DNA of 64,000 bases from Ramazzottius varieornatus (Eukaryota > Animalia > Tardigrada): positions 699,839 to 763,838 of the forward strand of contig BDGG01000016.1 of NCBI GenBank assembly GCA_001949185.1. The letters run 5' to 3'. Shown here piece by piece: positions 1,688 through 59,987 of the stretch. Each line of letters opens with the position of its first letter. Positions within the stretch are counted from its first letter, which is position 1. A program made the position numbers and the translations under genes. Below the pieces are notes generated by a model, which searched no databases, had not been told where the DNA came from, and saw only the letters and a program-made list of their open reading frames with translations.

Positions 1688-1813
1688 TGGGACATGGGCA
1701 AATGAACTGAGCAAGATCGTTTTCCCAGGTAGCGCACACTCTCGGCCAGACGCAATGCAAATGTGCGCAACTTGAGATGACGCTCTGGTCGCAGTTCGTT
1801 TGCCCTCGTTTCA
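1688..1813. repeat. 125-bp palindrome family copy (abuts MRCK stop codon)
   Basis: TGGGACATGGGCAAATGAACTG..GATCGTTTTCCCAGGTAGCGCAC-25nt-GTGCGCAACTTGAG..CAGTTCGTTTGCCC. Confidence 0.85.
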
Positions 1814-57023: not shown

Positions 57024-59987
57024 ATGGCGCGGAAACGAAAGGTAAAAATCAGCTGGCGTTCAGTGGAAGTTTGAAGTCAGCTGGTGGATCTGCGTCAATC
57101 CTGATTCTTGAACCTTGTTTCCAGGGACGATCGCAAGTTGCCGCAAAGGCGAAATCCGCCACAGAACCGGAAGAGCTCAGCCGAGCCCCTCATACTTTCG
57201 TCATCAAAAGAGGCTCTGTGGGAAGGAGCGTTAATAACTTGCTGACCGACGTGAGGAAAGTCATGGAGCCGTACACTGCGTCTCAGCTGAAGGTAGATCC
57301 GTGCTGTGTATGACGTCTATCGTGCACATCTCTTACCGTTACCGCTAAACGTTGCTCGTGACGTCATGCGTCCCTGCACATTATGACCTGAAAAATCGTT
57401 ACAATAACAGTTCGACATTGTCACTGCGGCATTCGCTTGTTCTGATCTTGTGCTCATTCCTTTTCTGTTCTAGGTTGGTAAGAAGAATGTAATGAAGGAT
57501 TTCGTCTCGGTTGCCGGACCACTTCACGTTTCCCACATGATGGCTTTCAGTAAGTCGGAAAAGTCGCCGTTCCTTCGCATCATCAGAATTCCTCGAGGTC
57601 CGACTTTGACCTTCCGGATTGACAAGTTCAGCCTGATGCGAGACGTCGTATCGTCTCTGAAGAAGCCACAGAACCATCCGAAGCAGTATGATAATCCACC
57701 GTTACTTGTGCTAAACAACTTCAGCACAGAGAAGATGGAGACCAAGCTGACAACGGCCGTCCTTCAAAGCATGTTTCCCAGCCTGAATGTGACCAAGGTA
57801 TATTCCGCTGAGCCTTTTGCAATACTGCCCATATTTCATACTAGTGAGGCCTTGTTTTGGTAGATCAAACTGAACCAGGTTCGCCGATGCGTCTTGTTCA
57901 ATTACGACCCGGAAACTGAGCTAATAGAATTCCGTCATTAGTAAGACATCCTGAAATATCCATTCAAAAGAATTCGTTTGGCAGTGCCGTGTGTAACCTG
58001 AATGTGGAAGAATGTTCCATGCTATCTTTTTTTGTAGCAATGTGCGGGCAGTTCCCCACGGAGTTTCACGGACAGTAAGGAAGATTGTGAAGGGAAAAAT
58101 TCCCGACATGAGTCGACATCAGGATATTGCCGACTTCCTCAGCAAGTAAGTACATAAACCGAAAATAAATCTGTTGAGGGTTTTTCCATTGAAGCTTCAA
58201 GTGTTCTAAGCCTCGTGAACGTCTTACGAATGATTTTCGATCTGTAGAGGTGTAGATGCAGCTGAAAGTGAAGGGGAAGACAACGATCCGGACAACAGGG
58301 TAGCTTTGCCACAAGACATCAGCACTCGAGGGAACATGGCGAACCAGCTAAGTTCCATTCGCTTGACGGAGCTGGGTCCGCGCATGACTTTGGAGCTGAT
58401 CAAAATTGAAGAAGACATCTCTACGGGAGAAGTCTTGTACCACAAGTTTATCCATAAGACCGAGGAAGAGATTAAGAACGCACGAGCAGCCAGGCTTCTG
58501 CGACAGTAAGTTTTCGAAGCAGGAACTGGAACCTTGGCTAACAGACTTGACAAGATCGCTTTTCGAAGTGGCGCCCACTATGAGCCAATAACCTCGAAAA
58601 AGTGCGCAACTTGGGAACACAGTAGTTTGTCGAGTTTTCTCCAGACTCCCAGTTATAAAAGATGAAAGTGTCAGAAAATTAATTTTTATGCAGAATTTAG
58701 TAACGAATGGAGAGGGTAGCAAACTAATACGTAAGTTGTAAGTTATCAGCTCGATTCAGCAAAGTTGACACTGTTTTTCTAAAAAATCAATTCTTCCTCA
58801 CCTACCTCGCTTATGCACCAAAACGACGCTCAAACTAATGAGCAAACTCCTTGTACGATATGAGCACAAAAAAGCTGTATACGACAAACGGTTAAAAAAA
58901 TATGAGATCAAGCATAACGCGCACTTTCCTGAAACCTGTGAAAACATGCGCGCCAAATGACCGGGGCAAAAGGTTTTTCCCAGAAGAAAAATTAAGATCT
59001 TTCAAGGCTTAGCTTTGTTTCTCAAACGACTGATGCCAAACTGGAGCCCACTAAACTAGCTCCAAGAATCATGCTTTGAGAGCTTCTTTCATGCTAGAGA
59101 CTTGGAGCTGGAAAATTCTCAACGAAATCACAAGCAGAATCTCATTACGCGTTTCAGCACCAAGTTTTAAAAATGAGTTTGCCAGACAGATTTTCATTGA
59201 AACAGGTTGAAAGCGAGTCTGTTACACGCAGAATAAGTTGGAAAACGAAGAACCAAGTGAAATTTAATGAATACCGAAGACTTGCGTTTTTTGAGGGGTG
59301 AAGTGTGAACGACAGGGTCAACTTTGCTGAATGGGGCTGTAGATTGCTTTTATTTTTTCCAGGACGAGGAAAGCTGACTTGAGTAGACAACAAGAGCGTA
59401 ACGTCGAAAGGAAGAACGAAGTGGCTGAAGAACATCGTGAGAAAGTCCGTCAGGGTATCAAGCGCAAGTTCGGCGAAGCTACGCAAGTAGTTGAAGAAGA
59501 CAAGGACGATGAGTACGATGACGGATACGTCGAGAAGGAATACCCATCCGATGACGACGACGAAGCCTGGTACGAAGAGGAAGTGGGTGAGAAGCCTGAA
59601 GAAGGCATGCTGGGCAACCCGAACAGATCGGGCTTCCGACGAGGCGGGAGAGGTGGACGTGGAAGAGGCTTCGGACGTGGAAGAAGCTTTGGACGAGGAG
59701 GTCGGCCTCGCGGAGGTGGCAGTGTCAGGTTCGACGGTGGTTCGAGAGACGAAGGAGGTGGCGGGTATCGCGGCAGGTCGAGCGACAGAGAAAGCTCGCG
59801 TGGACGTGATGGCTTCCGTGGAAGTTCCCGTGGGGGCGGAGGTTTTCGCGGCAGTTATCGTGGTGGTGGCAGAGGGTCTCGAGGAGGTGACTCTGGACGG
59901 TCAAGGGGAGGGGATCGAGGTGGACGAGTTGGTGGAAGACCGTTCAATAAAGCTATCGCTTTCCGCAGAAAATCGTCGTCACGTTGA
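57024..59987 (+). CDS. PPAN: Peter Pan / Ssf1 Brix-domain ribosome biogenesis factor, multi-exon, with RGG-rich C-terminus
   Basis: MARKRK|GRS..RAPHTFVIKRG..DVRKVMEPYTASQLK; KDFVSVAGPLHVSH..PRGPTLTF..PPLLVLNNF..QSMFPSLNV; IEFRHY; SIRLTELGPRMTLELIKIEE..GEVLYH; DDEAWYEEEVGEKPE. Confidence 0.95.
58527..58651. repeat. 125-bp palindrome family copy (PPAN intron)
   Basis: GACAAGATCGCTTTTCGAAGTGGCGCCC-25nt-GTGCGCAACTTGGGAA..ACTCCCA. Confidence 0.83.

Follow-up and report, generated by a model that had tools for sequence, protein, structure and literature searches.

Distribution of the palindrome family in the window and the genome

In this study, we analyzed a stretch of 64,000 nucleotides from the genome of the tardigrade Ramazzottius varieornatus (contig BDGG01000016.1; scanned as G000:C16:699839-763838 and called the window below), whose assembly comprises 55.8 Mb in 200 contigs, and focused on the short palindromes scattered through it, each built around an inverted pair of a well-kept core. 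An earlier note on this DNA had described them as a dispersed family with at least 21 loci. The family proved to be real: an iterative nhmmer search, seeded with a single copy (27642-27766) and run to convergence, identified 25 family loci in the window, spanning 1689 to 58637 (Table 1). We counted 28 occurrences of the 8-mer TGGCGCAC in the window, where 1.7 would be expected, and two inverted cores separated by 20-30 nt (core-N20-30-core) occurred seven times against 0 expected. Both orientations were present, as had been noted before, with the central loop on the plus strand in 14 cases and on the minus strand in 11.

Several copies lie in or near recognizable genes. Exons of a kinase resembling MRCK/CDC42BP were found on the minus strand between 3714 and 8103 (CNH domain, 3714-4214; KELK domain, 7678-8103), and the introns of this gene hold at least five family copies. 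One exon open reading frame (ORF; 5605-6054) gave a weak DMPK_coil match (E=0.0023) below the Pfam cut-off, and the MRCK-like exon that is flanked by two copies has relatives at 83% and 65% identity. A PAP_assoc exon of the Cid1/TENT type lies at 24-536. Among the four Pfam-supported exon ORFs, to which the comparison was confined, no family copy overlapped a matched domain.

Table 1. Copies of the palindrome family in the window (positions are those of the window)
Position	Strand	Description	Search, flanks or fold
1689..1812	+	Full-length, subfamily A	nhmmer E=3e-28; flanks ATGT/ATGT
3188..3306	+	Full-length, subfamily A; left inner stem shortened by a small deletion	flanks AAAC/AAAC
5503..5627	-	Exact dyad 5545-5585, decayed outer arms; occupies most of a short intron of the MRCK-like gene (gene on minus strand)	
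6082..6190	+	Heavily decayed; cores barely recognisable	nhmmer E=1e-10
7033..7125	-	Exact dyad 7059-7100, 26-nt spacer	
8040..8166	+	Full-length; adjoins KELK-domain exon of the MRCK-like gene	
20099..20223	+	Full-length, subfamily A	flanks ATCT/ATCT
22168..22303	.	Two-hairpin dimer, centres 78 nt apart; second unit with exact dyad 22246-22286	
27643..27765	-	Best-preserved, subfamily B (terminus GCGAGCTCGGCAAAG); arms 84% complementary	flanks AACT/AACT; fold -78.5 kcal/mol, z=-10.9
28105..28222	+	Near full-length	nhmmer E=3e-20
28598..28723	+	Full-length	
30280..30373	-	Exact dyad 30293-30333; one outer arm lost	
30652..30760	+	Short (109 nt), both termini, exact dyad 30691-30731	
39418..39590	+	Two-hairpin dimer, centres 73 nt apart	
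40538..40655	-	Near full-length, subfamily A	nhmmer E=3e-28
45027..45157	+	Full-length, exact dyad 45068-45108	
45932..46055	-	Full-length, subfamily A; query of genome-wide BLAST, best non-self match 87% over 95 bp	
47019..47101	+	Truncated: one arm missing, 24-nt spacer	
47300..47400	+	Remnant: left core 47341-47348 abuts right-arm sequence; palindrome centre deleted	
47916..48006	-	One arm lost, 24-nt spacer	
49314..49421	-	Short (108 nt), both termini	flanks ATTT/ATTT
50309..50507	-	Two-hairpin dimer, centres 78 nt apart	
58528..58637	+	Near full-length, subfamily B-like	nhmmer E=1e-17

The window contains an assembly gap of 144 N (23698-23841). The copies on either side of it end at 22303 and start at 27644. 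More than 1.3 kb thus separates the gap from the closest family copy, none of the analyses extends across it, and the results reported here are unaffected. A 95-nt "inverted repeat" at 23676-23865 was discarded as an artefact of the N run.

The family extends through the whole genome. Exact dyads numbered 1,991 genome-wide (2 in the control), and the exact 11-mer AAGTGGCGCAC was found 7,002 times (20 in the control). In a 200-kb sample drawn at fixed offsets on six contigs, we identified 47-48 family loci, or about one per 4 kb; with a further 90 kb of cut-outs, 290 kb were sampled in total. Two routes, the density in the sample and the count of the 11-mer, agreed on a genome total of about 12-13 thousand hairpin units, or some 2-3% of the DNA, and the family appears to be the commonest of the interspersed repeats encountered in the DNA sampled. 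It is best masked or annotated before intronic "motifs" are read in this genome. The copy-level statistics given below are based on 129 copies and on genome-wide pattern counts.

Density varied locally: one 10-kb segment (G000:C2:500001-510000, L008) held 14 family copies, including chains of two and three hairpins, and was several-fold denser than average. At the very start of contig 1 (G000:C1:1478-1652), three exact copies of AAGTGGCGCAC recur with an 82-nt period and form a tandem array of hairpin units. In the searchable literature, we found no prior description of this palindrome family and no work on tardigrade MITEs (miniature inverted-repeat transposable elements) specific to it. The strict dyad had 0 matches in the metagenome collection, where tardigrade DNA is rare, so that this result is little informative; a looser dyad matched 120 GC-rich bacterial contigs without arm similarity, which were rejected as chance matches.

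Anatomy, subfamilies and dimers

The termini of the full-length unit were fixed with the help of 38 copies. The unit is a palindrome, about 123 bp long, that begins with GGGAC and ends with GTCCC, with arms of about 57 bp around an asymmetric 9-nt loop and ends of the GGGACGTCGGCAAA type. The 11-bp motif AAGTGGCGCAC sits 39-49 nt inside each end, and the two motifs form a dyad, 25 nt apart, that measures 47 bp from core to core. The stretch between them reads approximately G-CTTTCAG-(9-nt loop CCAATAACA)-CTGAAAG-C, that is, an 8-bp stem flanks the loop, which reads CCAATAACA in one orientation. The asymmetry once ascribed to the whole spacer thus belongs to the loop of about 9 nt, and the rest of the spacer continues the palindrome. 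With about 123 bp the element is too short to code for a protein, and it shares with MITEs the short length (<800 bp), the non-coding nature and the high copy number; its terminal inverted repeat (TIR) is the entire element.

We distinguished two subfamilies, which differ at about a dozen arm positions, each mirrored in the other arm. The outer arm reads GGGACGTCGGCAAATGA(A/C)TTGAAC in subfamily A and GGGAGCTCGGCAAACAAACTCGAC in subfamily B. Within copies, both arms belonged to the same subfamily in every case (AA 31, BB 12, AB 0), and the covariation seen at 27642-27766 arises because this copy belongs to subfamily B. Hairpins also occur in close pairs: among 14 pairs less than 130 nt apart, 13 were spaced by about 71 or 82 nt. 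The junction between the hairpins recurs from locus to locus, and in several two-hairpin dimers the outer ends are complete and of the A or B type. Three loci in the window are such two-hairpin dimers. The common junctions and complete outer ends imply that multi-hairpin elements were mobile units bounded by their outer ends. The motif itself does not differ between the subfamilies, nor does it differ in dimers.

Target-site duplication and transposon class

The earlier note had found no consistent target-site duplication (TSD) and had not recognised the family. Both statements have to be revised. First, a direct 4-bp repeat flanks the GGGAC...GTCCC unit: in 38 copies, 96 of 152 flanking positions matched between the two sides, compared with 73.8 +/- 4.6 after permutation (p<5e-5), and the excess appeared in the 4-nt register and in no other. 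The flank has the form A-W-N-T, with the outer A in 76-84%, W in 87% and the final T in 74-76% of cases, N following the order T>A>C>G, and the matching signal residing in the two middle positions. Second, alignment-free counts over the whole genome agreed. The left flank was ATTT in 37 elements, of which 11 also had ATTT on the right; the right flank was AAAT in 43 elements, of which 19 also had AAAT on the left; and the inverted arrangement ATTT...AAAT was found once. In the AACT class the numbers were small, and the three elements with inverted AACT/AGTT flanks equalled those with direct AACT/AACT flanks.

An AWWT/AWDT tetranucleotide target is a hallmark of Sola1 transposons (PMC3845634, which cites Bao et al. 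2009). The A-W-N-T duplication matches this hallmark, and we therefore filed the family, by its TSD pattern, as a Sola1-type MITE. The two subfamilies, together with dimers that have complete ends, fit a MITE moved by cut and paste. In whole-genome searches with two well-kept copies, the best non-self BLAST matches had 77-87% identity; as there are no near-identical copies, the family is old and inactive. No solo ends were found in 354 kb, where every outer-arm match belonged to an ordinary copy.

A different stretch of 133 nt (G000:C2:5769713-5769845) carries the first 10 nt of the family (GGGACGTCAG) and, at its far end, TCCC, with ATTT on each side; its first 80 nt at least have neither the core nor any similarity to the family. 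It may represent another MITE family with the same ends, or a chance resemblance.

Uneven conservation of the core and spacing of the dyad

The motif is far better kept than the rest of the element. In the same copies, substitutions per site after insertion amounted to about 0.10-0.13 in AAGTGGCGCAC, about 0.25 in the rest and at least 0.3 in the duplicated flanks. In 79 near-complete copies, divergence from the consensus was 0.096 in the core and 0.239 at non-core, non-diagnostic positions, regardless of base. Base composition was rejected as the cause, as non-core G and C diverged by 0.22-0.23 and core G and C by 0.08-0.11.

Ascertainment bias, which the earlier note had named as a possible refutation of its claim of selection on nearly invariant cores, does not account for the pattern either. 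A hidden Markov model (HMM) was built from the 33 outer nucleotides of copies at one set of loci and then run on an independent 264 kb. All 33 of its matches adjoined a hairpin, and the core, now collected without being used as a seed, had an identity of 0.84-0.90, compared with 0.55-0.75 in neighbouring positions. Copies retrieved by the termini ATTTGGGA...TCCCANNT alone likewise showed only 12 core mismatches in 112 positions. The blocks GGCAAA and GATCG were also better kept than average, and the ends of the element were not specially preserved (TGGGA about 0.75 when not used for ascertainment). The well-kept blocks had previously been placed at multiples of the helical turn: GGCAAA, GATCG and the core are real blocks, but they start at about 9, 27 and 39 and show no 10.5-bp periodicity.

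The distance between the two cores was also maintained to some degree. Among 24 copies in the window, the spacer measured 25 nt in 17, 24 nt in four, 26 nt in two and 27 nt in one; among 94 listed dyads with exact cores, 75 had a spacer of 25 nt, 13 of 24 nt and four of 26 nt. The 27-nt stretch of the arm from GGCAAA to the core had its modal length in 54 of 100 cases, compared with 80% for the spacer, and in aligned copies indel events per nucleotide were about 0.005 in the core and spacer and about 0.013 in the outer arms. Thus, the spacer is about twice as well kept as the arms. To call it fixed at 25 nt, as was done at first, overstates what is a modest effect.

Constraint in place or neutral decay

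The earlier note had argued that a decaying MITE should erode uniformly. This premise is too simple, because any position that transposition requires in cis remains the same in all source elements. Two MITE models were therefore compared: (a) the motif is required in cis and each copy has decayed neutrally since its last jump; and (b) the motif is constrained in place. Under model (a), the TSD produced by the last jump should have decayed like the core. In the same 80 copies, anchored by their termini, the middle dinucleotide of the far-side TSD was intact in 30 and the 8-nt proximal core in 24. These counts imply a per-site retention of about 0.64 for the TSD middle and about 0.87 for the core, and no single value fits both. 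We also used the duplication as a clock, fitting a simple substitution model by maximum likelihood to four TSD classes (11/37, 19/43, 3/19 and 2/20). The estimated decay was 0.36 per site, and a value of 0.10 was worse by more than 27 log-likelihood units even if 20% contamination was allowed. Compared with the TSD flanks of the same copies, the decay of the core is about threefold slower.

Other observations bear on the same question. Core divergence hardly followed non-core divergence (slope 0.08 +/- 0.09), staying between 0.07 and 0.11 across quartiles whose non-core divergence spanned 0.16 to 0.35. Apart from the subfamily positions, changes in one arm of a copy are independent of those in the other, in that their complementarity equals the product of the arm conservations, as expected of decay in place. 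Exchange of flanks by recombination was considered as a cause of TSD mismatch and rejected: 0 of 43 copies were A/B chimeras, which limits such exchange to at most about 17% of copies. Of the earlier proposal that non-uniform conservation reflects selection on a dyad site for a DNA-binding dimer, the part concerning a protein site fits the slow decay of the core relative to the TSD clock, and its hairpin version finds no support (see below). Taken together, the balance of these results tips, by no wide measure, toward a motif that was constrained after insertion.

On this basis, the palindromes are probably copies of a Sola1-type MITE, a non-autonomous cut-and-paste DNA transposon, in which the dyad is a protein-recognition site that has been constrained since insertion. 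A transposase supplied in trans would have cut at the GGGAC ends, and insertion at A-W-N-T would have duplicated 4 bp. The dyad would be recognised by a protein in a sequence-specific manner and would at first have served the mobilising transposase as its subterminal site. The motif may still be constrained today, with a host or domesticated protein binding it or with copies that lose the motif being preferentially lost.

Several points weigh against this interpretation. The TSD clock is built on few sites per copy (two informative ones per end) and on exact-anchor counts, and its decay of about 0.36 exceeds that of the non-core interior (about 0.25), so that the clock may be inflated by something other than point substitution alone. 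One analysis put conservation at 0.84-0.92 for the flanking A (-4) and T (+4), values compatible with a slower neutral decay. Source elements that already differed, and not decay in place, could account for some of the non-core divergence, and part of the interior variation is subfamily structure. With regard to classification, the superfamily was assigned from the TSD pattern alone, and the termini match the TIR of an insect Sola1 MITE (printed in PMC3845634) in GGAC only. Repbase requires positions 1-11 of Sola1 termini to align with at most one mismatch (PMC4455052); the family termini exceeded this limit when aligned to the insect Sola1_NA TIR, the one terminus used for comparison. Finally, no autonomous partner with these termini was found in 354 kb, where all 180 half-element matches had a partner half or a decayed one. 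To our knowledge, there is no Pfam model for Sola transposases.

The alternative that fares best is the same Sola1-type MITE in a wholly neutral state, whose motif stayed invariant along the source lineages through its cis requirement in transposition and has no host function. The identity of the motif in both subfamilies and in dimers is what one would expect of a transposase site, an association among non-core positions within subfamily A (I_A 0.67-1.4) indicates some variation at the level of source elements, the conservation of the flanking A at -4 is compatible with a decay after insertion of about 0.1-0.15, and the weaknesses of the TSD clock add to this side. However, this explanation predicts equal decay of TSD and core, which the 80 anchored copies do not show. 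It also has to accommodate termini that, though required in cis, are conserved only at about 0.75 when not ascertained, arms that vary independently outside the subfamily-diagnostic positions, and the limit on flank exchange set by the lack of A/B chimeras. We consider wholly neutral decay a serious but rather unlikely explanation.

If the slow decay of the core holds in all copies and across species, the family would be a clean invertebrate case of a DNA transposon that supplied thousands of maintained protein-binding sites. An 11-bp dyad that decays some threefold more slowly than its own TSD, with a spacing that resists indels, is unusual for a dead MITE, and if the constraint is true, the 47-bp dyad would offer a direct handle on the candidate binding protein.

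Architectural-protein, RNA and recombinase explanations

A more far-reaching possibility is that the transposon seeded about 23,000 copies of the motif as convergent pairs 25 nt apart, roughly one pair per gene, and that these might now be under purifying selection as sites of a CTCF-like protein or of a protein with a domesticated Sola1 DNA-binding domain. If true, a MITE would have given rise to a chromatin-organising network throughout this genome, which ranks among the most compact in animals. We regard it as improbable. The narrower version, in which the MITE would have spread paired sites for an architectural zinc-finger protein of the CTCF insulator type, with a network of about one dyad per gene under purifying selection, appears more improbable still. 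It draws on the resemblance of the core AAGTGGCGC, at eight of nine positions, to the strong 3' part of the fly CTCF consensus AGGTGGCGC (PMC1904468). The panarthropod ancestor is inferred to have had CTCF (PMC5094011), the core shows constraint in comparison with the TSD and the arms, and the density of about one unit per 4 kb would suit such a network. On the other hand, the single mismatch falls on the "AG" strong feature, a strongly conserved G of the consensus (PMC1904468), the upstream CC is out of register, and several other motifs had been compared before this match was seen, so that chance is not negligible. The similarity to CTCF is thus a lead suggested by sequence comparison and not a result. 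No fit to the core was established for the motifs of E2F, NRF1 and ZNF143 or for the P-element THAP site.

It had also been suggested that the palindromes act as intronic RNA hairpins. In this explanation the stem, as RNA or as a DNA cruciform, would be under selection, for example in small-RNA precursors, editing substrates or splicing aids. Many copies are intronic, and well-kept copies fold strongly (z=-10.9 and -9.4), but decayed copies fold no better than shuffled sequences (z=-1.4 to -1.8). The arms mutate independently: arm complementarity equals the product of the arm conservations except at the subfamily-diagnostic positions, and the compensatory changes are subfamily differences only. 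In the alignment, 74.4% of cells were paired, compared with 71.0% after shuffling, and changes on both sides were confined to columns 19-31. RNAalifold returned no consensus structure, an Rfam search gave no match, and the loop orientations were about equal (14 to 11). The hairpin and cruciform explanation is largely refuted, and we give it very little credence.

Last, copies often fill most of a short intron (for example, 5503-5627), and an ANNT target could in principle be AGGT and provide both splice sites, as in introner-like transposons; yet 0 elements genome-wide have AGGT on both sides, the intron around 5503-5627 uses a separate GTAAGA donor that lies some 35 nt beyond the element, the direct TSD is unlike the duplication-free insertion of hairpin elements by an HUH enzyme or a site-specific recombinase at the dyad, and the left/right subfamily chimeras expected of such a recombinase were not found, so that both ideas are refuted at the level tested and retain next to no probability.

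Other inverted repeats in the window

Three further inverted repeats were observed. The first (32952-33163) has 59-nt arms, 80% complementary and 94 nt apart, starts with GTACTGTATTCCCTCGATAG and looks like another MITE-like family. The second (9359-9466) is a well-kept small palindrome with 34-nt arms, 91% complementary and 40 nt apart (GAAATCCTTCAGGTACTTCCGATTC...), unrelated to the 125-bp family. The third (16917-17320) is a group of overlapping AT-rich inverted repeats (I8, I11, I16 and I24) built on ATATCGAT or CGATA-type words.

Comparison with known systems

The closest described relatives would be the Sola1_NA MITEs of Bombyx mori, Rhodnius prolixus and Heliconius, which are short and non-coding, have TIRs and reach tens to thousands of copies (PMC3845634). 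The tardigrade family has in common with them the 4-bp TSD with its A-W-W/D-T preference, termini that start with GGAC or GGGAC, and a short, non-coding sequence. In contrast with the insect elements, it forms one single palindrome (about 123 bp, loop of 9 nt), its copies are far more numerous (about 12,000 in 56 Mb), its termini are unrelated beyond GGAC, and it has an internal 11-bp dyad that is kept above the rest.

A second point of comparison is provided by the rodent B2 short interspersed nuclear elements (SINEs), retroposons that carry one CTCF site each, with demonstrated binding. Both have spread a GC-rich motif of the zinc-finger type to thousands of places, and in both this motif outlives the remainder of the repeat, whereas the tardigrade family is a DNA transposon whose two convergent putative sites lie 25 nt from each other. 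The bacterial REP/BIME and Correia-type repeats are similar in being very abundant short palindromes with a conserved core, which in their case is bound by host proteins. REPs are moved by HUH enzymes without duplications, whereas the tardigrade family is eukaryotic, has a 4-bp TSD and is found in introns.

Finally, the P element, Ac/Ds, En/Spm and Sleeping Beauty (with its IR/DR arrangement) have subterminal inverted transposase sites, tens of nucleotides inside their ends, that are required in cis. We know of no case in which these sites stay conserved in dead copies. The tardigrade motif is similarly placed, yet in dead copies its decay is about threefold slower than that of the TSD.

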